Below are positions 2,966 through 21,833 of a stretch of 64,000 nucleotides of DNA, piece after piece. The translations under genes were made by a program, and so were the position numbers. Under the pieces are notes generated by a model that was given only the letters and a program-made list of their open reading frames with translations, did no database searches and was not told where the DNA came from. Every line of letters starts with the position of its first letter. Position 1 is the stretch's first letter. The DNA is from Bispira polyomma. Its lineage: Eukaryota. The stretch spans positions 25,792,001 to 25,856,000 of the forward strand of contig OZ287752.1 in NCBI GenBank assembly GCA_965649765.1, given 5' to 3'.

Positions 2966-3449
2966 ATTATTGTACACACATTAATTTCTCAGGTTTACCT
3001 AATCATCTATTCTTCTTTCCATCACTTTTTTCAATCGGATTCCCTTCTTCAATCACCTTTATTGTTAACTTGGAAGTCAAACGAATAAAAGGGCGAATAT
3101 ACCTGGCCGATTTTGCTTCCGTATCTGTTTCCGTCATTTGCAAAAATTGAAATATAATAAAAAAGAATACACCTGGCCCACAGCACCTCCAAATAGATTT
3201 TTTTGGGGATGACGAACGAGAATATGAAGTAAATATCATTGATTTTTTTTTCAAAACATGAATACTACCAAAATTGGACAGTTTTGTTGCATTTTAGTTT
3301 GTTTTTAATCAACATATAGACCTTTTAAAACCAGTACTTCAGTTCGATATTATGGGGAAAATGAAGAAGAAGACTCCTATCTACAACAAGTAAAGACAAA
3401 CATCAAGAAAAGTACATGCAAGACAGCCATAAACTCGTTAGATCTGTAG

Positions 3450-3552
3450 CAGGTAACTGGTAGCTTAGTGGTTTTCTCAGGTACTAAGCAGTTTCTTACT
3501 GTCGCATGCTGCCTCTTGACAACACGGTTGAGATGTTAAATATCTTGCTGAA
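3450..3552 (+). mobile_element. Degenerate SINE 3' half (V-domain-like)
   Basis: ggttttctcaggtact...gtttc resembles the central domain of V-type SINEs and is followed by an aaatatcttgctgaaa tail-like segment. No head is recognisable. Confidence 0.3.
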
Positions 3553-4239
3553 ATTAGAAGCATCCAACTTACCAAGTGAGTGGATAGATTTGAAGGGAAG
3601 ACCTATCATAACTGCATCCTATCGCATCTCCTCGGGTAATATACAAAAGGCGGACAAGCCAGCATTTTTTATTCATTCAGTTGCACCATCTCGAGAGTAC
3701 ACTTCAACTGGCAATCAAAGATTTTATAGAATTTTAATATTAGTGGGAAAGGGTGGTACTTTTTTTATGCCACAGCAACACCAACAGGCAGCACAGTATG
3801 TGTACCGCCAGCAACAGCTCAGACCATAGGTACCACAGCCTCTTCAGCAGTCACCTGTCAGGTCCACCATCTAGCTTGTCCAACAAGTGCCACAAATCAT
3901 CTGTGGAGGTTCCTCGACAGCAAGCACCAGTGGCACCAATCTCTCCAACCCACCCTCAGTGGAGTCCTACATCATAAACACATCATCAGTGTCGTCCTTT
4001 ACAAGGAAATTCGACATGGGCGGGGGGACATTAGCTACCAGAACATGGACACTCGCAATCCTATGATGCCTCTGACGCCTCATGACACAGACACAACCCA
4101 AAAAATTGGACCCAGGGAGCAGGGAAATAACCCTCTAATTAACCAAGCTTTCCACTTCAATCAAATTTAAAATCAAAAACTGTAGTGGGTCTCCTTTTAA
4201 CATTAAGGTGAGTCGACTTAACATGGTTCTACTTGAGGG

Positions 4240-6149: not shown

Positions 6150-7200
6150 TGTGATTAGAATGTTTTTAGTTTTTATTCTCTGAAACCTATAATACTTGTC
6201 TCAGTACAAAGACTGGCAGGATGACTATTTCATTCAGCAGGTGCTGCAACTTTAAATGATTTTGTAGCTGCAAGATTTTGAGGTAAACAGTCAGAGGCGG
6301 AGTAATGATTTCTGAGAATGATTGCTTAGACATAACACAGCTGATAAGTAGGCTGGCTGCTGTACATGGATAGTCTTACAAATGAGGGCATTACTTCGAA
6401 TTTTATACATAAATCAATCAGTAGCCAGTACAATAGGTTAAGGGGTTGTGTGTCAACACTGACCAGAATAACATAAAATTCTGGATTGTTTTAAATTGTC
6501 TGTAGTTTGTTGATTTGTCCCTGTTCGATGACATACAGTGGTTGCAGTAATCGACTAATCTTGCCAACAAGACATTAACAGCTGCAACATCATTTTCAAA
6601 AGTTAGGTGACGACTTACTTTATAAAAGTCACAAATGTTGCAGTAGCAATATATTTGAAACATGTATTTTAAAGGATAAATCAGAGTAAAAAAATCAGAG
6701 TAAACAATTTTTTGGCACTGTTGACAGGAGGAGTGTTGTTACTGAGAAGAATTACAGGTAGAACTTTTTCCCTTGGATGTTTTGTACCAATAAGAAGAAA
6801 GTCTGTTTTTCTTGGTTCAGATTTGTGTATGATCTGCATAAAGGGATAGCTGACATCCTGGTGTGAGGATAAGACTTGATCAAGTGGATGAGTGTAGAGT
6901 AAAAAAGAAGGGACCCAGGACATTTTATGTCAGGTAGAACAGGGCCAGTAGATTTATGAATGGTCTTATTTACTGTCTGCCATAATTTTCGAGAGAAATT
7001 AAAGAGTCGGGCTGGTTTTGGAAATGAGTAAATCATAATGTTCTTTCTTGACCATTAAAAGGAGCTTTTTATGATTCTTCACAGAAGCTCTGTAATGATC
7101 TGTCAATCCTAGATTTAGTAAGAGGCAAAATTCTCTGGAGGAACCTTTTCCGCATCTCAGCCACAAGGTTTCTAGTAGTGATCCAGCTGCTGTCTGGGTG
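6150..7200 (-). mobile_element. Highly degenerate L2-clade LINE ORF2 fragment with internal deletions
   Basis: Remnants SRKLWQTVNKTIHK (linker), LYTHPL..VLSSH, KTDFLLIGTK, SAKKL, LVDYCN and KVAAPA.xNSHP occur in correct RT order. Confidence 0.7.
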
Positions 7201-11424: not shown

Positions 11425-12341
11425 TGTATGGCCCCCTGTTGAGCCCCTTCTTTCTGTATCTTGGGTCTCTGCGTCTTGCAGGGCTGTAAACTGAGATAAC
11501 TGGGTCACAATCAGAGCTTCTTCAGGTGTGTTAATATCAAAGTCCCTATCCTGCTCCTCATCATCTTAATTCACCATCTTCCTCATCCTTCCCCTCTTAT
11601 TGGGTGGCATATTTATTAAAAATTTACAATATAAAAACTTTTAATCTCAAGAAAACTAACAAGAAACAAAGCAAAATATATATGTATTGCAAAGTATATA
11701 TTGCCAGTTGCTGATGTGTACTCTTCGCTGCTAAAAATTTAATGAGGTGAAGATTACTGTCACAGCATCCTTTTATATGTTTCTCGTCCCCCGATTTGAC
11801 TCATGAGCAAATAAACATATGCTTCCGAGTTATCGTTGTCAACCCCGAGTTTTCTTTCGTGTTATCCTTACACCCGGCCGTGGCTTCCTACTTTGACCTG
11901 AGCTATCGGAAGCCACGCCCAAGTTATCTTCACACCCCAAGGACTTATCCTTAGCACATGACATGATAACTCAGGGCCAATGACCCATAAGTCGGTAGCT
12001 TCCCAACCTATTGTTAGGGATGGGGCAACACTCGGAATGGTTATCTTTGAATTGCTTCTGATTTTGGTCCTTGGCAGCAATGATTGTAAAGATAGGTTGT
12101 TAGGGCTGAACAATAAGTCATTGCAAGCGCCCAATTGCTCTAGTTATTGTGTGTGTATCACCCAATCCCAGAGGTTTTCAAACATGCTTAAAAACCTGAG
12201 CGAGTGGCCCGAATGCCCCTGATAGCTAAATATAACTCGTGAGCAACTCCCCATCCACCCAATTAAACCCACAGGGGCCAGGGTACGCAATGCGCCGAGA
12301 TACGGTGTAGAATTGCAGTACGTAATACCTAGCTATAGCAA

Positions 12342-13385
12342 TTTTGTAATTGTAATTGTCATCAGACTTTTATTGTGCTTAATCTCCCCTTAACAAAGGG
12401 GACTCTAAGGCGCACCAGCACAAAAGACAGTTATCCAATTTCCAAAATCAAGGGACAGAAAAAGGGTCAGCAACATAGAGCGCGCCGGGGGATGATTGAG
12501 ACTAAGGTGGATATGCTTTAGTGTACAAGTGGGTTTTAAGCTTCTTTCTAAAACAGGATAGTGAGGGGGAAGTACAAATCACATCAGGAAGACCATTCCA
12601 AACAATGGGAGCATCAAAAGCAAAGCTGTGACCAAACTGTTTTACCGACCTTTGAGTAGATGGGTGGAACTTCGGAACAACAAGGAAATTACTACCACTC
12701 TGACTACGTCTGGTATTGTAGGAACTACTGTAAGTGGAAAGATATGGGGCAAAATACTTTGGAAACCCAGTGTGGAGAAACTTATAAACAAGTGTAGCTG
12801 TCTTAAACACTGAACGCTGTCCAACAGGGAGCCAATGCAATTTCTTAAGAACAGGAGTTATACTAGTGTATCGACTGGTGTTTGACACAATTCTAGCTGC
12901 ACTATTTTGAATGCATTGTAATTTGCGTAAATTAAACTTTGAGAGACTCCTGAAAAGTGAATTGCAGTAATCCAGTCTACTACTGACAAAAGCACTGGCC
13001 ACAAGTATAGAAGCATCATAAGTGAGAAACCGTCTGACACGTCTAAAGTCACGGAGTTGCATAAAACAGCTTTTGCAGACACTCTGAACGTGTTTAGAAA
13101 AAGAAAAGTCAGAGTCAAACCATACACCCAGGTTCTTGACAGAATCAGCTGGACTGAAAGGGCTACCCAGGATGTCAACTGGAAACAATGCTTTTAACTT
13201 ATCCCTCTGTTGTTTTGAGCCAAAGATTATGAACTCAGTCTTGTCGGGATTAAGTTTGAGTTTACCAGTTGACATCCACTCTTTCACATCATCAATACAC
13301 CTGTTCAACTGTTCAAAGGCAGTAGATGTGTTTTTATGGGATAGGTGCACATAAATTTGGGTATCATCTGCATAAAAATGCATAA
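12342..13385 (-). mobile_element. 5'-truncated L2-clade LINE (RT C-terminal half, uninterrupted ORF 12502-13401) with 3' UTR stem-loop and (ACAATT)n tail
   Basis: HFYADDTQIY, KLNPDKTEF, SVKNLGVWFD, SRLDYCNSL, LHWLPV, FAFDAPIVWNGLP. The 3' UTR has a tcccct-ttgtta-agggga hairpin followed by acaatt repeats. Confidence 0.95.
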
Positions 13386-14494
13386 CGTATATATATATCA
13401 AGCGATGAAACTGAAACCGTACACATTGTGTTTTCAGTCAAAGTTACAAAATACTAAAGACACTTATAATAAAATAAAATGGTACATCTTAAACACAAGA
13501 CAACATACCACACTCGTTCATAAAGTACAACATCACTTACTGAACATTAGTTGTTATATTCATCAATTTACTTTGAAGTGACAATGTTTTGGCACATTGT
13601 GTGTCAATATGAAGAGTCATGTGACCTTTCTCTAACCAGTTTCTACGTAAAACTGCTTTCTGATTGGTCAGCTCCTCCCTAGAGACCGTGACATTCTTTT
13701 TTGTCAGAAATAGGTTCAAACTACACTGCCATGTAAAAAGTATTGAACAGCATTTATATCATTGTTTATACCATCGTACATCTTCATATACCAATTTTTC
13801 CATTCACGATGCAAGAAATATATGCAGAGAATCCACTGACATAGTAAGATGCTTTTTTAAAAGTTTTGAATATATGTATTTAGTATTTATGTAAAATATT
13901 TTGAGTAGTTTTATACATTTTCATTAACAATTTTTTTCATATTAATAATAATTAGACACAAACCGAATCTGAATTTCGCTAAAATGTTTTAAATATTCTC
14001 TTTTAATTTGAACTGTCTTTGTGATATGTATAAAATTGAAAACTAATTGACTTTTTTCATGAAACAGGAATAATATTTTTATATGTAATTATTTGACGGA
14101 CGGACATACTATTGCCTTGATAGAGTGTTCTTAATATTGTGTGTATTTATCACACACAAGAGTACTTTATATGTATGTTTATGAGAATAGTGTTGCAAAT
14201 AATATTGGGATAAATGATTACATGCAGTACATGGGTGAGAGAAAATCATGAGTTATATTATTGTAAATTAGTATGCGTCTATCAAAAAGTGATGAAATGA
14301 TATTCATATATATTTAAATTTTGTTTAACTTTGTGCTATATCTTTGTCAATTTAAATATCAGTTTAATTTGATTTCATTTTAATTAAATTTAGGACAAGA
14401 CAAAAATTATTTTCTCTCTACTATGTACGAGTTCAAAATCAAAAACTTTAAAAACATATATCAATGAGAGCGTGGGATATCGAGGAGCATCTGA

Positions 14495-15500
14495 CATTCG
14501 AGGATAGGCATTTTAGTTGCAATAAAAAGGTGTACTTTTACATGCTATGACACCTTCACAGACAAAGTTGTATGCAGTAGGGAACAATTTCCAATAACAC
14601 TGGCATTTGCGTTAACAATACACAAGGCTCAGGGAATGTCTCTGAATTATCTTGAGGTAGATTGTGCAACAATATTCTGTGCTGGGCAATTGGCTGTTGC
14701 TGTAGGTCGTGCTACAAACACACTTAGGTTAAGGGTGCTTAACTATAGCAGTTCTGCTGCCAAAATAAAACACGCCAGTAAGGTTAACTTGTTCTATGGT
14801 AAATTACATGAAGTGCAGAACACAAATGATTGCACATTAACATTTCCAGAGTCAAAGGGGTGCTGCAATGCAATTAGTTGCTCGAGTGTTGTATCTTGTG
14901 ACACACTTCCGAGTACAACACAACTTGTGCAACCACATCATTCAAATGTTGTTGACCAAAAAAGTAGTGAAATTCAAACTACCATTGTACAATCTTATCC
15001 TGTATTAAACATTCATGAAGTACCATCTCTCCCTGTACCAAAAATGCAAGAATTTTTCACATTTAATTTAGCATCACCAAATACAAAAATGCAAGAAGAT
15101 ATGGTGGATGCATTTTCTGACCTACAGCACAGTCCAAGATTTCCAAGATTTTGGAACAGCGTTCTTGCATTCACCTGTTCAGAATTAAGTGTTATGAATA
15201 AGCCCTCGAACAAAGAGTGGAATAACCATACCCAAAATTTTCATGACTATTTGACCAGTACAATTTTCAAACAATCGAAATCTGACCTTTTTGCAGACGT
15301 CAACTTAGATGATACTGTCATGCACAGCTTAGCATTCAAAATAGCTAAGAAGGCCAGGGATATAGCTCTTGTCACTAAAGCATATCCCCTTTGCTTGAAG
15401 TGGTAGAAGCAGATAAGGCTTTAGATGATACAGATTGTGTCCTGCTGCGTTACATTGCTGACTACACGATTGCTGCAGCCCGTAAAAGATACATAATGTA
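14495..15500 (+). pseudogene. Pif1-family helicase C-terminal block (motifs V-VI) plus extension; N-terminal helicase motifs absent; in-frame stop at 15404-15406
   Basis: The frame upstream of the listed ORF is open from 14495 and reads SREQFPITLAFALTIHKAQGMSLNYLEVDCATIFCAGQLAVAVGRATN, matching the Pif1 QFPLxLAxAxTIHKxQG and GQxxVAxxR motifs. Reading through the TAG gives LLRYIADYTIA. Confidence 0.85.
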
Positions 15501-15674
15501 TATATCAAGAGACAAATGTATGCTTTTCTATATCCCATTCCCTTTATTCTATTTCTTGTAATCCTTTAAGAATAAACTTTTTTATTAGTAATCACATTTG
15601 ACAACCCCCCCAAAAAAAAGTTATCACACCTAAGTTGACATTGTTTCTTGTAATTATTTTCTCTATTCAAACAG

Positions 15675-16478
15675 GTGTCATTCAGCATACGCAAAAAATC
15701 ATTAAGAAATATACTAACAAAGTGGCATCTCTTGAGATCGTTGACTGCCCCATACCAGCAAGTGATATCCATGACCAAGTATCCAGAAACATTTTCAGAA
15801 ATTAAGAGACATAACACCAGCGCTGGTGATGGCACCGGACTTACCTGTGTCAATGATGACACTTTTCACTTTTTCCTACAGCTGAACAAATTTGCACTTC
15901 AGTACGTTACTCAAAGTAACATAGACATTTACCAAGGGGAACTACATAAACTTGCTTTAAACAAAATTGCTACTAATGAAGATTTAATGCAAACATGGTT
16001 CGGACTGTTCAGTAATGATGTTGCCAGTGAAACTGATGAAGATCTATTTAATGTGAACTGCATTATTGTCTTTGAAGAATTGGTTTCTAAATTTTTAGTA
16101 ATTTTGTTAGCCGATACTAAGAAAAAATTGGTCGAAAGTAAGGGTACAGTTAAATGTAAAGCTTTAAGGAAAGAAATAACATGTGCTAACCCAGGTTTCA
16201 GTGAATGTATTAGTCAAACCAAGTCAGGTTATACAACATTGAAAAACGCTGTTAGTGAAATAGACTCAGACTACCCTTGTGGTACATGCGGCACAGAATG
16301 TGCTATAGACTGTATAGAATGCTCTCTCTGCAAATCGTGGTTTCATTACAACTGTTTGGGATTGGATGGAAGTGAAATTTTTATAACCAACATTAACATG
16401 GATTTCTACTGCCCAGACTGTGATGTTAAACCAAAACCTAGTAAAAAGAAAGGAAAAAAGAGAAAACACAATCAGTAA
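15675..16478 (+). CDS. Probable terminal exon with PHD finger and basic NLS-like tail (likely spliced to the Pif1 block)
   Basis: Follows a ttcaaacag acceptor. CGTCGTECAIDCIECSLCKSWFHYNCLG...FYCPDC is a C4HC3 PHD finger, followed by KPKPSKKKGKKRKH. Confidence 0.75.
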   Translation: MSFSIRKKSLRNILTKWHLLRSLTAPYQQVISMTKYPETFSEIKRHNTSAGDGTGLTCVNDDTFHFFLQLNKFALQYVTQSNIDIYQGELHKLALNKIATNEDLMQTWFGLFSNDVASETDEDLFNVNCIIVFEELVSKFLVILLADTKKKLVESKGTVKCKALRKEITCANPGFSECISQTKSGYTTLKNAVSEIDSDYPCGTCGTECAIDCIECSLCKSWFHYNCLGLDGSEIFITNINMDFYCPDCDVKPKPSKKKGKKRKHNQ

Positions 16479-16640
16479 CATAAAATTCATAACATAATGT
16501 AACAATTCATAATAATTATCCACTTTGTATACTTCCTAAACAAGCACCAATAATATTTGCAACATCATTCTTTGACTAGTGTTTAATTCTAAATTCAAGA
16601 GTTTGTGTAATATATTTGGATTCATTTACTATTTATTTAG

Positions 16641-18896
16641 GGTGTTGCAATGTTTGCAACGTGTGGAGGATTGTGATCCATTGCCTCTTAGGATAGCATA
16701 CGATGCCTACCGAGCTTCTTGCGCTACTTTTACAGTCGATGCTTGTTCCAAGGAACTTTTCTCCAAAGCCATCAATATTAAATTTCCAGCATGTAGAGTG
16801 AGGAGATTGTACAATGGCAGTAGCGAGGTCTGCTACAAAAACCTTGCTGCAAGAACTGATTTTATATATCGCATTGCCAGAGAACTATGTCCTTTTGGAA
16901 AAAGATACTCAGTACCTTCTTTTGTTAAAAAACACAGACATTATTGTAAGCAGTACTTACAGATTGCAAGTGAAAGTTAAAATTCAAAATTGTAAATGGG
17001 CTATGTTTGTGGGCGAAAAAGAAATTGATTTAAGTGCTTTGGGATTCTCAAGTAAATTTATTTGGAAGAAGAGTTGTCTATCATGTGTCATTTTTTTAGT
17101 GAATAACATCAGAATTTGCAAAGGGAAAGAACATGGTACAAATTCAAAGTATGTGTTCAATGAAACTACCACTTCCAACAGCAGCATCACCTCAACTTAC
17201 CGGAGCAAATATTGTTTAAAAGTTGTGTCACCTTTCTGTTATGGCAATGTTTGCTCCAACTGCATAAAGTATGTACCGAAGGTTGTTGACACCAAATCTT
17301 TGGAAAGTGTGACAAGTGCGACAGTAGAGTTTGATGATTACGATTCACATGATTTTCAAAGCGTGGCAGATTTTGCCTTGGCAAATGCCTCATCTGAGTT
17401 TCAATCATTTATTAATGGTCAAATTAAAAACATACAATAAACTCCCAAAGGCAGAAGGTGGGACCCATCATTTATTAACTTTTGTTTGGGTATATACATG
17501 AAGTCACCAAGTGTGTATGAGAAATTGCAGAATGGGGGTATGTTTATCTTACCAAGTGGCCACCTTCTTCAATACTATAAAAACAGTGTAAATCAGTCAA
17601 CAGGTTTAAAGGATGATGTGTTACTATGGATGAAGAAAGAGATCACAAGGTTAAAGATTTCGAGTGAGGGTTACTATGGGGGTTTCTTCTTGATGAGATG
17701 TCCATTCAACCTGATATTTCTATCAAAAAGTGTCACTCAACATTTCTATTGATTGGTCAGGCTGATATGGATGACACATCAAACCTAATGAACATAATTA
17801 CCCATGTAAAAAGTGAAATATCTTTATCCAAATATGTACTTCAGTATTTATTTCTGGGTCATACAGGTTTTAGGTTTCCTGTGGCACATTTTCCGTCAAT
17901 GGGAGCAAGTGCACACCAACTTTACAACACATTTTGGGATGAAGTAGACAAGCTATCAGAATATGGCTTTCATGTTGATTACTGTAGCTTGGATGGTGTC
18001 ATTTCAAACAGACAGTTTCGTTCTTTACATTTCACAGACTGTGATATCAGTGAAAAACAATTTGCTTCAGTCAGTTCAATCAACCCATCAAAATCTGTCA
18101 TATTCATACAAGACATCAAGCACAACCTGAAAAAAGTTTGTAATAGCTTAGTTAAAAGTAGTTCAACTTCAAACAATATTAGACATATAAAGCTTGATGG
18201 TAATTCTATTTTATGGTCCACATTTCGTCAATGTTATGAGTGGGACATTGAAAACCATGCTTTTCCCCTGTGCAGAAGTCTTTCTGAAGAACATTTTGAT
18301 TTGAGTAATTCCTCTAAAATGAGAAATAAGTTAGCAGAGGACGTACTGAATGATCAAATGTTAAACTTAATGTTACAATACCAGAAAACTATTAATCAGC
18401 CTGAGACACTTAATGGAGTAATAAAATTGTTGCAACATACTTCAATATTAGTTAAGTTTTCCCATGACTTAAAACCAGTATGTGATATCATTGATGAGAG
18501 ATTAAAAGACTTTGATAAAGTTGCAAAGTTTTTCAGTGAGTGGATAGGGAAAGATCAATTTTTACTCAGTAAAGAATGTCGTCAGGATTTACAGTCATAC
18601 CTCTCTGGTTTCAAAGGATTGTGTATTAAAGTATTTTCTCGTAATCAAGATAACTCATACTTAGTACCAGCCCGTATCAACAGTGATCCCATTGGAAATA
18701 GTTTTTGCCAGTATCGTGGTATAATGGGCTGAATACAAATCCTACATATGCTATGTATGGCCCCTCATCTACAACAGTTACACTGGATCAGAGTGTCGTA
18801 TCTAAAAAAAGAAATGCACATACACCTAGTAGGGGAAAAGAAAATGTAAAACCATTTGCCACATCAACACCAAATTCCTTGAGAAGAACGAACTAG
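16641..18896 (+). pseudogene. P-superfamily (THAP9-like) transposase preceded by an RFX-like winged-helix; several frameshifts/stops
   Basis: YDAYRASC...SKELFSKAINIKFPACRVRRL..GSSEVCYKNL (RFX-like); PKGRRWDP..CLGIYMKSPSVYEKL..LPS; DEMSI; LDGVISN; QDIKHNLKKVCN; KMRNKLA; NSDPIGNSFCQYR (catalytic E replaced by G); NTNPT. Confidence 0.85.
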
Positions 18897-19194
18897 CACA
18901 ATCTACAAAGGAAAGTACAATGGCTAAAGTTTTAAGATTATAATAAACTTAAAAATATGATGATTGCCTATATGGTTTTGAGTATTATTTTTGGTTACAA
19001 AATATCCTACTATATCTATATATTAAATAGAAAATGCAATGATTGCCTGTAAGGTTATAAGCGTGATTTTTATCGAAGAGGCCATTTATTTATGTATTAC
19101 TTTGTCCTTTACAATTGTTGACAATATCACTGCTTACATGGGTTAGCACATTCGTGGTTTTTTTTATTAGAAACTGTTATATATTGCTTGTATT

Positions 19195-19610
19195 TGTGAA
19201 TCCCCTAAGGGTGCCCACCTTAGGGCGTGCATGACATTCGTGAGAAGCATATGGTCTTACCGGGGCTAGTGTTATACTTGCAAGTATAAAGTGTATAAGC
19301 ATTGTTTGTATTGGTGCGAATATATATATATATAGGGACGGACAATATTCCATGTGTGAATCCCCTAAGGGTACCCACCTTAGGGCGTGCGTGAGATTCG
19401 TGAGAGCATATGGTCTTACCGGGGCTAGTGTTATACTTACAAGTATAAAAGTGTATAAGTATTGTTTGTATTGGTGCGAATACATATATATATAGAGACA
19501 GACTATATTCCATGTGTGAATCGCCTAAGGGTGCCCACCTTAGGGTGTGCGAGCAATTCGTGAGAAGCGTATAGTCTTACAGGGGCTAGTATAATACTTG
19601 CAAGTATAAA
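19195..19610. repeat. 160-bp tandem repeat, ~2.6 copies, palindrome-rich
   Basis: gtgaatcccctaagg recurs at ~19196, ~19356 and ~19516. Unit 1 contains the perfect palindrome ttatacttgcaagtataa, and the units carry a ccctaagg/ccttaggg hairpin. Confidence 0.95.
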
Positions 19611-20819
19611 AAGGCGAAGTTAGTGAAATACGTATAGATGGTGGAGCGGGCAGTACCATGTTTTTTCCCCAGCAAATTCTGTGACAATGTTGTATTACTG
19701 TCTGTAATAAATATTAAAATTGTTACATTTGCAGTAATTGACTACTATGGTTATTAGTAATATATTGAAATGTTATGGTATTAAACTTTTAATTAATGGT
19801 ACTATGGGTTGATTTCATTGCTAATGTCAACTTTCAATGTATAGTTAAAGAAAAGCGATGACTGCCTTATGCTTATGAGCAAAATTATTAGTGAGTAATA
19901 ATGTGTTCTGGGTTCCAATCCCAAATGAACTTTGACTGCAGTTTTTCATGGGGAATGTTCAGCAATTCACCTGTGTGTGCATTTGTGGGTCCTATATCTG
20001 TTTAATATTAACTGTCTGCACATATGCTGCTCTTTTATTTCAGCTAGGCATTCTTTCATTTATTTATATACTGGCAGAGAGATATTTTAAAATGTTTTTT
20101 TTTCTATCTTGATATAAATATGTACATTTCCCGCGTGACAGGTCAAAGGGTCAGAGGTCAAGAAAGCAAGATAGTAAGTAAGCAGAATGCGGTAAAATAT
20201 TTTATTGTTAGTCTATGTTAAACTACTATATACAACGTGACTTAAGGTCATGATAATTTGTAACTTTAAGTCATACTAAATTGAGTGAGAGTAATAAAAT
20301 ATTTTACATAACTTCAAAGAACAAGATAAGGTCACCCCAAGACAGTTTAAATAAGTGAAATGACAAAGCCCGTAGGGGACTTATAAATGGAGATGATCTT
20401 ATAATTTAGACTACAAAAAGGGGGGCTAAAGATCACCTTAAATACAGGTTAGTATACTAAATTTTTAACCCATAAGGGAATTACAAAATGAGGTGACCCT
20501 AAAATGTGTAGAAGAAGAGTTAAGTTGTAATTTTTCAGTTAATTACAGATTCTATTACCTTTTAATGAAACAGTTATTTCATGAAGTTGAATTACTAGTT
20601 GTAGCATACAATTACTAGGAAATAAAATACTACTGTGTGAAGTTAACTTTATAGTTGTAACATGAAATGACTAGCAAGTGAAATAATAATTGAAATTCTA
20701 TATGACACTATACATGACTAGCATGTGACTCCATGTAAAGCAAAAATTACATAATTATCTAGACTATGAAATATAGACTAAATTTTGAGTAGAAACACCC
20801 AAACCCAGCACGTAGGGAG

Positions 20820-21833
20820 CTAGGGAGAAGAAGTAGCAAGATGAAGGCGAAATGTGTCCGATACCTGCTGTCCCGCATCCACTGAGTCGGTAACATACCT
20901 CCACACGCAATCCGACGTCCAAGTGCCATGTTTTTGGATGTTCTGAATGCTGACGTTATGGTTAAAGGCAAAAGTGGCACCAGAACGTCGGAAAGCGTGC
21001 AGTGTGAGGCCAGAATCCTGCAACTGGAGCCTGGCAAATATCGTTTTGAAATGCCTGCGGACACGGGTGTCAGTAAGCGGAACCCAGTGAGATTTGTCTT
21101 TGAATTGAAATAAGGGTGAATTAGGTTCAGACGGAGTAAGAGCCATAATTGCCTGCAGTGACCCCACGGGGCAAAGAGGAGAACCCAGCAACCGTGGGAT
21201 AGTAATAAGTCTAATCTGATTATTACTCTGCATAGTTTTGGACCATTTTACCAAAAGGACAGCTTTGTCCCTGTGAAACATGACATCAGCCCTGGATAGA
21301 TGTCTCAAAGCAGAAAACTGAAGACAGGAATGGGGTACTAAATTGGATAACCTGAGGAAGGAAAAGTAGCTGACCAAATACACGGCCGTAAAGATAGGAC
21401 CCATGTAAGTGGTGTTGGAGACATTGACAATACTCGTCAGAAGAGGTATGTCTATAATCTTTTTGAGCTGAACATTTAAGGGGGCAGCCAATTGGACAGA
21501 CTTTTGATAGTAAGCCAAGCGAGGGTCACTGAAGGCAAGAATGGGCACATTGTATACAATACTCTTAGCTTTAATAGCAGTTAAATAATTAGCCATATGG
21601 GCAGGTTTTACAGAGTTAAAGTGTAAGAATTCTAAAAAAGCAAGAAGATCAATAGCTGTCACCTGGTCACAAGGCAGATCCGAGAAGGATGCATAAGCTT
21701 GGTACACCCTATACATCGCAGTATAAGATCTGTCCGTAGACCTGCAGAAGGCCAAGTGAAGCTTCTTCGTTGCATTTTGATATAATAACTGCTGCAGGGG
21801 AGTTGTAGCTATAACACAACACAAAGCAGACAA
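20820..21833 (-). CDS. Tyrosine recombinase (YR) of element 1; probably entered by splicing at 21808
   Basis: FLRLSNLVP (R), VKWSKT (K), LHAFRRSGAT (HxxR), HGTWTSDCVWRY (H/W, Y): the full catalytic set. The ORF begins at a TTG rather than an ATG. Confidence 0.95.
   Translation of the reverse strand: MSALCCVIATTPLQQLLYQNATKKLHLAFCRSTDRSYTAMYRVYQAYASFSDLPCDQVTAIDLLAFLEFLHFNSVKPAHMANYLTAIKAKSIVYNVPILAFSDPRLAYYQKSVQLAAPLNVQLKKIIDIPLLTSIVNVSNTTYMGPIFTAVYLVSYFSFLRLSNLVPHSCLQFSALRHLSRADVMFHRDKAVLLVKWSKTMQSNNQIRLITIPRLLGSPLCPVGSLQAIMALTPSEPNSPLFQFKDKSHWVPLTDTRVRRHFKTIFARLQLQDSGLTLHAFRRSGATFAFNHNVSIQNIQKHGTWTSDCVWRYVTDSVDAGQQVSDTFRLHLATSSP

Follow-up and report, generated by a model that had tools for sequence, protein, structure and literature searches.

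A lineage of P superfamily transposons encoding a transposase and a predicted Pif1-family helicase in marine invertebrates

The window, a 64,000-nucleotide stretch of Bispira polyomma contig OZ287752.1, carries on its + strand, at 12270–20124, a decayed and 3'-truncated copy of a P superfamily transposon. We interpret it as the remnant of a cut-and-paste DNA transposon of roughly 10 kb, belonging to a lineage that encodes two cooperating proteins, and we give this explanation as a whole a probability of about 0.6. The element is a real transposon that is common in marine invertebrates, and the two-protein P superfamily lineage is new: no description of a Pif1 helicase in a P-type transposon was found in the literature searched (Repbase lay outside that search). 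P elements are a textbook case among transposons and a standard tool of geneticists, and THAP9, their relative in humans, remains poorly understood. The original prediction, made from the letters of the window, had placed a two-gene P lineage with a helicase partner at 14495–18896. The lineage is backed by linkage, shared terminal inverted repeats (TIRs) and co-divergence, and there is an element at that place, but it extends further in both directions. The blocks that had been predicted are all present and co-oriented on the + strand, where they were placed through exact peptide matches (Table 1).

Table 1. Features of the transposon copy, in positions of the window
Feature	Position	Strand	Details
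5' TIR	12270–12298	+	CACAGGGGCCAGGGTACGCAATGCG...; the same sequence bounds copies C4, C1 and C8
Foreign insertion, LINE reverse-transcriptase C-terminal fragment	12341–13377	-	Interrupts the 5' region of the element
5' leader, upstream of the helicase gene	13378–14515	+	95.8–96% identical to copies C8 and C1
Junction of 2.2-kb internal deletion	14513–14515		3-bp microhomology
Predicted Pif1-family helicase core remnant (end of 2B/2A domain, motifs V and VI)	14516–14800	+	98% identical to C8 ORF residues 305–360
Pif1 motif V	14615–14641	+	TIHKAQGMS
Pif1 motif VI	14684–14713	+	GQLAVAVGRA
Module X, all-helical, between helicase and PHD finger	15116–16223	+	Profile matches
Module X, first piece	15116–15373	+	
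Module X, second piece	15397–15510	+	LLRYIADY at 15442–15465
Module X, third piece	15684–16220	+	GLTCVNDDTFHFF at 15837–15875
PHD finger	16272–16427	+	
Basic NLS-like tail	16428–16475	+	KPKPSKKKGKKRKHNQ; stop codon ends at 16478
Transposase N-terminus with RFX-type winged helix	16579–16860	+	Domain core 16678–16848
Transposase middle region	16862–17611	+	tblastn to family B N-terminal exon, 30% identity, E 7e-31
Cys cluster	17108–17272	+	ICKGK...C..C; four Cys nearly invariant in 17 relatives
P-type HTH region	17549–17584	+	LPSGHLLQYYKN
P-type catalytic core	17612–18896	+	45% identical to family B exon, E 3e-89
160-bp subterminal tandem repeat	19195–19611	+	2.6 copies (TRF)
3' truncation point	20124		Copies C4 and C8 run on to their 3' TIR

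The limits of the element are set by sister copies in the same genome, which have the same ends as the window element, TIRs of 25–29 bp starting with CACAG and 8-bp target site duplications (TSDs). The 5' TIR in the window matches the 3' TIR of these copies over 25 bp perfectly, or over 29 bp with one mismatch. Four copies in this genome have 8-bp TSDs, namely C4 (9896 bp, TSD GCCTGATG), C1 (4613 bp, TSD GTCAATCT) and two others (TSDs AAAAAACA and GATGTACC); in one additional case the TSD is 8 or 9 bp, and the C8 copy is bounded by TIRs with no TSD seen. The sister copies differ from one another through internal deletions with microhomology. In the window, homology to C8, C4 and C1 breaks off at 12340 and picks up again at 13378, and a reverse-transcriptase-like ORF lies on the minus strand at 12502–13401. 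No protein domains were found in the 5' leader. The subterminal 160-bp repeat is present in more copies in C4 and C8, as judged from repeated BLAST matches. The final ~750 bp with the 3' TIR are missing, and no match to them lies anywhere in the window.

This copy had been described as dead, and so it is. The catalytic Glu of its transposase is replaced by Gly (NSDPIGNSF, 18679–18705; PIENTF in C4), the reading frame shifts near 16860, 17690 and 18723, and the first catalytic Asp lies past a frameshift. Its helicase is without the N-terminal half (motifs I–IV) because of the 2.2-kb deletion; copies C8 and C1 still have this half, within ~2.2 kb that include a 388-aa PIF1 ORF.

Do the two genes belong together? 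In this genome 17 of the 21 P-type helicase matches have a P-type transposase match no more than 6.1 kb away, and these 17 loci show four gene arrangements. The four unlinked matches are copies of family A, the window's own family, and two of them (C8 and C1:15.8 Mb) are TIR-bounded deletion derivatives. Among the transposase matches, 13 of 30 are without a nearby helicase match, and therefore helicase-free relatives may exist. Elements of Haliotis, Dreissena, Mya, Ptychodera and Porites, from three phyla, contain both genes between a single pair of TIRs starting with CACAG, and TSDs are found in four of these five (8 bp in Haliotis and Dreissena, 7 of 8 bp in Ptychodera and Mya), the Porites copy being TIR-bounded with no TSD seen. 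The original prediction had named consistent linkage and TIRs with 7–8-bp TSDs as points to check; the former is seen here and in all five other species, the latter here and in four. Elements of the lineage are 8–15 kb, with TIRs of up to 663 bp. The helicase and transposase identities are correlated (r 0.84, exact Mantel 1/5040), which shows co-divergence of the two genes. The copies in Haliotis, Dreissena and Porites, with their long, near-identical TIRs and long open frames, suggest recent activity.

Gene 2 encodes a predicted P superfamily transposase, whose P-type part lies at about 17549–18890 in the window. Its catalytic core has the order RNase H N-terminal part, GTP-binding insertion domain, RNase H C-terminal part and short basic tail. 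In the family B exon the domains TNP-like_RNaseH_N and TNP-like_GBD (PF21787 and PF21788) score above the Pfam cut-offs; all 32 relatives have the first and nine have the second. Across 32 sequences the D, D, E triad of that exon is preserved, with D28/E29 and D128 nearly invariant and E356 invariant. Foldseek matches the transposase model to 6pe2/6p5a (E 3.8e-17), and VIA aligns the family B exon model with 6p5a_A over 346 residues, Drosophila residues 207–565 (Z 33.6, rmsd 2.9 A), the runner-up fold being Transib at Z 13.4. The P-type RNase H-fold transposase of the original prediction thus has the agreement of Pfam domains, Foldseek and VIA. The structured part of the model stops at the position matching Drosophila residue 565, all full-length relatives terminate 70–85 residues beyond the catalytic Glu motif NSDxxENxF, and Tnp_P_element_C is found in no full-length relative. 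The transposase stops shortly past its catalytic Glu and therefore has no counterpart of the helical C-terminal domain (CTD) found in the Drosophila P transposase.

The N-terminus of the transposase is more variable. A THAP domain is typical of the P superfamily, yet it is not part of the catalytic definition, and neither the ORFs of the elements nor the 32 relatives gave a THAP match. An RFX-like domain had been proposed to replace it. This holds for family A, where the Pfam RFX_DNA_binding domain scores 34 bits in the window (cut-off 27, E 4.5e-8) and 28.6 bits in C4 (cut-off 27), and where RFX5 in the PDB matches the winged helix at E 6e-4. It does not hold for the related families, as Pfam finds no RFX domain in families B and C or in the other species and a profile built from three families has no match in the PDB. 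The N-terminal region of these families can be aligned weakly.

Gene 1 encodes, in order, a predicted SF1B helicase of the Pif1 family, the helical module X and a PHD finger, in a product of about 1,050–1,150 aa across the lineage. The helicase ORF of C8 matches Pfam PIF1 at 1.4e-21, with Pif1_2B in addition, and human and yeast PIF1 at 1.6e-34; helicases of the lineage match PF05970 at 1.4e-21 to 2.9e-36, together with the 2B domain PF21530. The Walker A motif, the DE of motif II, the PFGG(I/V)Q...QLPPV signature region and the Arg of motif VI are all present, and motif VI has the form GQxxVAxGRA throughout the lineage. All ten long proteins with module X have the arrangement PIF1-2B-X (in two of them, which are cut at the N-terminus, only the 2B domain is visible). 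The C-terminal PHD finger was detected in five of the ten, and a Rep or P-type RNase H domain in none.

Module X, which is found in 1290 protein clusters and has an intron-like gap at ~15498–15674 in the window, was modelled once with AlphaFold from 12 sequences (pLDDT 75). Among 48,161 chains the best VIA match to this model is the CTD of the Drosophila P transposase (6p5a_B, residues 617–733), with 117 of 118 residues aligned at rmsd 3.0 A and with Z 9.7, a range in which helical domains may match by chance. It is the sole chain with Z of at least 8, and it is 3.3 Z above the next match to the same part of the model. On this model the second half of module X appears to have the P-transposase CTD fold. 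The segments LRYIADY and GLTCVNDDTFHFF had been said to resemble the C-terminal region of P transposases, and the structural comparison agrees, but sequence profiles do not: no likeness between module X and the P CTD was found by Pfam (E <= 10) or by profile searches of the PDB, whether or not the PHD finger was included. Foldseek, and a VIA re-examination of the Foldseek list, did not see it either, and the ESM Atlas returned generic helical matches only. The PHD finger matches Pfam PHD at E 0.0024 in the window, and the Ptychodera copy passes the Pfam cut-off at 4e-7; a profile of the finger matches the PHD finger of Pygopus at 8.8e-9. Those PHD fingers that act as readers of histone H3 tails are Cys4-His-Cys3 zinc fingers with a Trp before the His. 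The Trp of WxH is present here, and the domain is of the PHD fold family, with a putative role in histone reading.

From these observations we infer how such an element might move. The transposase would excise and insert the element as P elements do, with 8-bp TSDs as the result, and failed gap repair would leave internally deleted copies. The helicase protein would join the transpososome through its CTD-like module. This docking would put a 5'-3' motor at the staggered-cut ends that need unwinding, or at the repair synthesis of the donor gap across an 8–15-kb element, and the PHD finger may steer the complex toward open chromatin methylated at H3K4. The CTD of the Drosophila P transposase acts next to the other subunit and touches single-stranded transposon DNA (PMC7776569). 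The lineage would then have an obligate two-subunit eukaryotic DDE transposase, in which a P-type core has ceded its DNA-contacting CTD to a Pif1 helicase, and the SF1B motor and PHD finger are a built-in subunit of the transpososome. We consider this tentative, at slightly less than an even chance. No description of such a two-subunit case among eukaryotic cut-and-paste transposons was found in the literature searched.

Is the helicase instead a true conserved passenger that acts only after excision? It would then assist repair or replication, for instance by driving D-loop synthesis in donor-gap repair or by clearing obstacles, with no structural part in the transpososome, and the likeness to the CTD would be a chance helical match. 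Linkage and co-divergence are equally compatible with this, the CTD match is silent in sequence and below the Z that is safe for helical matches, and a host helicase, the Bloom's syndrome homologue, already works in the repair of P-element breaks (PMC7776569). However, it leaves unexplained that every transposase of the clade lacks the CTD and that an unbiased search of 48,161 chains picks exactly the missing domain, and we regard it as unlikely.

A docked helicase and a post-excision accessory both treat the pair as functional. Alternatively, one P family could have captured a host PIF1-PHD gene in a single event (transduplication) and carried it as non-functional cargo. The bit scores by which we judged the affinity of the helicase, to solved structures and to Rep-linked loci, are 123 to human and yeast PIF1, 47 to Helraiser and 33–50 to the Rep-linked helicases of the same genome. 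The helicase is thus nearer to cellular PIF1 than to Helitron helicases, and an origin from a cellular gene is therefore plausible. Capture as inert cargo is contradicted by open frames of 700–1150 aa that are maintained at 28–47% identity, with the helicase motifs kept, in molluscs, a hemichordate and a cnidarian, by the pair staying together through the four gene arrangements, and by module X accompanying the helicase in every long protein examined. We think it very improbable.

Among transposons, Pif1-type helicases are otherwise a Helitron feature, and the window copy is fragmentary and lies in a repeat-rich region with nested insertions, so a Helitron or host PIF1 gene fragment might have come to lie beside, or nest with, an unrelated P element. 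Such chance adjacency is next to impossible, given one TIR pair around both genes here and in five other species (with TSDs except in the C8 and Porites copies), the linked helicase matches with none near Rep, the co-divergence of the two genes, and helicase proteins that begin 30–50 residues ahead of Walker A and therefore have no room for a Rep domain.

Helitrons end in 5'-TC and CTRR-3' with a 3' hairpin, and they have neither TIRs nor a TSD. They and the Helentrons resemble the present lineage in having a Pif1-family SF1B helicase within a eukaryotic transposon, but theirs is fused to the DNA-cutting Rep and here it is a separate protein. Elsewhere in this genome 22 of 42 other PIF1 matches are within 6 kb of a Rep match. 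No Helitron Rep (PF14214) was found within 85 kb of the P-linked helicases, the nearest being 85 kb away. The original prediction had raised clustering with Rep-bearing Helitrons as the outcome that would speak against it; the distance to Rep and the bit scores point the other way. Helitron identity was rejected on the lack of an HUH Rep, the TIRs starting with CACAG with their 7–8-bp TSDs, and the closer relation of the helicase to cellular PIF1.

How does the lineage compare with other known systems? The Drosophila P element and THAP9 have a THAP domain, which is missing here, where family A has an RFX-type winged helix. The Drosophila P element has the CTD on its transposase, whereas here the transposase stops before the CTD and it is the helicase protein that has a CTD-like fold. 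The second gene, for a Pif1 helicase with a CTD-like module and PHD finger, the size of 8–15 kb and the long TIRs starting with CACAG are further differences from the Drosophila P element and THAP9. Galileo and 1360 also combine a P-type transposase with unusually long TIRs; to our knowledge each has a single gene, with THAP, and lacks a helicase. AcademH and KolobokH are likewise cut-and-paste DDE transposons with a helicase gene beside the transposase, but they are of other superfamilies and their helicases are not Pif1. We know of no CTD-like module or PHD finger reported in either. Their helicases are of the DEAD/Helicase_C type (PMC10799480). MuB of Mu, TnsC of Tn7 and IstB of IS21 are functional analogues only, in that a DDE transposase relies on an element-encoded, NTP-driven partner; they are AAA+ regulators of bacterial hosts, not SF1B helicases, and there is no homology. 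If the two-subunit reading is true, an obligate P core plus helicase would be the eukaryotic counterpart of these bacterial transposase-plus-ATPase systems.

A widespread sister lineage with a CTD-like fold on its helicase would be a natural experiment on the role of the CTD. It may throw light on the opening of staggered P-type cuts, or on the way in which an element of 8–15 kb is restored after excision. For annotation, a Pif1-type helicase among repeats is no proof of a Helitron, and many 'PIF1-like' or 'uncharacterized' proteins of molluscs, cnidarians and hemichordates belong to a two-gene P transposon. Two-gene P elements are also a possible vector system for large cargo.

Exons were searched and aligned individually, with gene models and splicing inferred from ORFs and from the annotated proteins of other species. 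The sequences used contained no runs of N and no contigs resembling human DNA. The three sequencing runs that contain the element are DNA, with even depth over the introns.

The P-type element in the window is a single repeat unit running from 12270 to 20124, as judged by aligning sister copies from the same genome onto it. Such copies are few (DNA search of 1.035 Gb in 75 contigs). The blocks listed in the original prediction were all found on the plus strand at the positions assigned to them, but the extent it proposed was too short. The ends and the lesions of this copy are given in the table, together with the related elements. The LINE fragment sits in the 5' leader of the element. Two of the sister copies, designated C4 and C1, are 9896 bp and 4613 bp long and have GCCTGATG and GTCAATCT, respectively, on either flank. 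The sister copies differ by internal deletions, joined with short filler or with an overlap of 3-8 bp, as is typical of cut-and-paste elements following failed gap repair. The shared ends, the target-site duplications (TSDs) and these internal deletions show that one mobile element, bounded by terminal inverted repeats (TIRs) and TSDs, holds both the Pif1 helicase and the transposase blocks, and thus rule out two adjacent repeats. As predicted, the window copy is dead, and long since inactive. Its divergence from the sister copies is ~4-5%, and among the copies in this genome none from its family, family A, was found intact.

Features of the window element and of related loci (L-numbers denote fetched locus DNA)
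Feature	Position	Strand	Details
Element left end	12270	+	CACAGGGGCCAGGGTACGCAATGCG; inverted at far end of C4, C1 and C8 copies
LINE insertion	12341-13377	-	RT C-terminal fragment, ORF 12502-13401; not in C8, C4 or C1 copies
Internal deletion	14513-14515		2.2 kb gone from window, kept in C8 and C1 copies
160-bp tandem repeat, 3' subterminal	19195-19611		2.6 copies
160-bp tandem repeat, 3' subterminal	L042 about 1500-2800
3' truncation	20124		Final ~750 bp absent from window
Tyrosine-recombinase ORF	20820-21833	-	~700 bp downstream of the 20124 cut-off
Haliotis cracherodii element, 7.9 kb	L053 8841-16696		TIR 330 bp, 100% identical; TSD GTCTCAGT, 8 bp
Ptychodera flava element, 14.8 kb			TIR 318 bp; TSD 7 bp
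Dreissena polymorpha element, 13.3 kb			TIR 663 bp; TSD GTTCCGGC
Mya arenaria element, 9.6 kb			TIR 39 bp; TSD 7 of 8
Porites harrisoni element, 11.6 kb	L055 7399-18975		TIR 636 bp; TSD none seen
Third-kind Pif1-like genes	C1:28930045-28931040, C8:12377244-12378254, C3:70885302-70886312, C5:11526993, C12:32104398

The subterminal repeat also gives several further offset matches in the C4 and C8 copies, and could be a set of candidate transposase binding sites. The tyrosine-recombinase ORF may be part of the sequence that replaces the 3' end of the element.

Protein searches of the same genome located 21 helicase loci (at least 34% identity) and 30 transposase loci. A transposase locus lies 2.8-6.1 kb away from 17 of the helicase loci; the four unlinked ones all belong to family A, two of them being TIR-bounded deletion derivatives. 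The helicase precedes the transposase in family A and follows it in the related family B, and the two genes are head-to-head in family C. Elements of families B and C are ~11 kb, with TIRs of 139-144 bp beginning CACAG and with TSDs of AAAAAACA and GATGTACC; one more case is 8 or 9 bp.

Transposase relatives occur in many molluscs, in cnidarians, and in one hemichordate, one brachiopod and one priapulid. Five loci from other species, three picked via the transposase and two via the helicase, were examined with their surrounding DNA. All five contain both genes, 1-5 kb apart and enclosed by long TIRs beginning CACAG. The pairing anticipated by the original prediction is thus consistent here and elsewhere. 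Was the helicase instead captured repeatedly and independently? Over seven elements, pairwise identity of the helicase tracks that of the transposase (r 0.84, a value reached in an exact Mantel test by only 1 of 5040 permutations). Divergence of the two genes has therefore gone hand in hand, which does not fit repeated capture.

The copy in H. cracherodii, with long open helicase-gene frames including one of 627 aa for module X (the conserved helical region between helicase and PHD finger) and the PHD finger, looks like a very recent insertion. In P. harrisoni the TIRs are 99.5% identical, yet the flanking TSD is absent, perhaps through recombination between two copies. In D. polymorpha (L056 10127-20393) and M. 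arenaria (L057 10076-16978) the antisense transposase gene separates the helicase-core exons from those for module X and the PHD finger, looking as though it sat within a helicase-gene intron.

The first gene encodes a Pif1 helicase. In the C8 sister copy an open frame of 388 aa is preserved; it contains Walker A, motif II and the PFGGVQ...QLPPV region, continues into motifs V-VI as in the window and is matched in Pfam by PIF1 (1.4e-21) and Pif1_2B. The nearest solved structures are human and yeast PIF1 (E 1.6e-34, 123 bits), followed by Bacteroides Pif1; Helraiser gives just 47 bits across 90 residues. The protein starts 30-50 residues ahead of Walker A, so that there is no space for an HUH domain. 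None of the 21 helicase loci has a Helitron Rep match within 85 kb, in agreement with the earlier claim that this is not a Helitron. Among the 42 other PIF1 matches in the genome, 22 are within 6 kb of a Rep match, and no P transposase lies close to any of the 42; the Rep-linked helicases share only 24-27% identity with the P-linked helicase. PIF1 frames of 899-921 aa, situated away from both Rep and P-type transposase matches, form a third kind of Pif1-like gene.

The helicase is followed by an acidic linker, module X, a PHD finger and a basic tail. Exons were searched and aligned singly rather than as joined proteins, and the gene models are predicted; the database proteins P0091 and P0211 hold helicase and module X in one polypeptide, and P0213 holds module X and the PHD finger. 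Judged by its profile matches, the PHD finger is genuine: that of Ptychodera is above the Pfam cut-off (4e-7), and the profile matches the Pygopus PHD (8.8e-9) and numerous H3K4me-reading PHD fingers. A module X profile searched against 1.84 billion representatives matched 1290 clusters, of which 229 reach E <= 1e-30. Ten long matches were examined. All have the PIF1-2B-X layout, two with a cut N-terminus showing 2B alone; a C-terminal PHD was detected in five, and a Rep or P-type RNase H domain in none. Module X was also detected in Porites and Mya, both outside the set from which the profile was built.

The second gene encodes the transposase. TNP-like_RNaseH_N and TNP-like_GBD are matched by the 344-aa frame of the window and by intact relatives. 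The catalytic exon of family B, modelled with AlphaFold (pLDDT 87), matches Drosophila P transposase in Foldseek (E 3.8e-17) and in the structure-alignment search VIA (Z 33.6, with 346 residues aligned onto Drosophila 207-565 at rmsd 2.9 A); the runner-up folds in VIA were Transib, RAG1 and Hermes at Z 10-13. The original prediction of an RFX-like domain in place of THAP holds for family A only. There an RFX-type winged helix forms the N-terminus (34 and 28.6 bits, cut-off 27), and no THAP domain was found in the element ORFs or in 32 relatives, but in families B and C this region aligns weakly and has no RFX match. In a literature search that left Repbase aside, no published description of a Pif1 helicase in a P-type transposon was found. 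AcademH and KolobokH are known helicase-bearing cut-and-paste elements, but they belong to other superfamilies, and their helicases are of the DEAD/Helicase_C type (PMC10799480).

All full-length transposase relatives (670-790 aa) stop 70-85 residues past the catalytic NSDxxENxF, with a short basic tail, and beyond the position matching Drosophila residue 565 the transposase model is disordered. The helical C-terminal domain (CTD, Drosophila residues 617-733) is therefore missing from the transposases in this lineage. A module X model (pLDDT 75, from 12 sequences) was aligned to one representative per 40% PDB cluster. Among 48,161 chains only 6p5a_B, from a Drosophila P transposase structure, reached Z >= 8, and the match is the CTD (Z 9.7, rmsd 3.0 A, 117 of 118 residues onto model residues 123-324); for these model residues the second-best match scores Z 6.4. 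The same part of module X carries LRYIADY and GLTCVNDDTFHFF, the module X motifs that had been likened to the P-transposase C-terminal region. That likeness stands at the level of structure but not of sequence, where no method detects it.

In Drosophila the CTD is attached via a flexible linker and touches target DNA as well as the single strand looped out at the transposon end (PMC7776569), which makes a CTD supplied in trans by a second protein sterically plausible. The transposase would follow the cut-and-paste route of P elements. In the simplest reading the helicase protein would be a second subunit, its CTD-like module docking at the position of the Drosophila CTD. An SF1B motor of 5'-3' polarity would thereby reach the single-stranded end of the transposon. 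This motor could separate the strands of the staggered cut, which is 17 nt in Drosophila (PMC7776569), or drive repair synthesis over the long donor gap, and the PHD finger would tend to direct the complex to H3K4-methylated chromatin. In a weaker alternative, the helicase is confined to a role in repair, and module X resembles the CTD by chance, which is possible at Z 9.7 because the fold is all-helical.

In one family B element (L045), short repeats of very high copy lie at 6300-6700, 3300-3700 and 1700-1900. Their depth in DNA runs sums to 1e4-1e6, and they probably represent SINE- or MITE-like sequences nested in the element.
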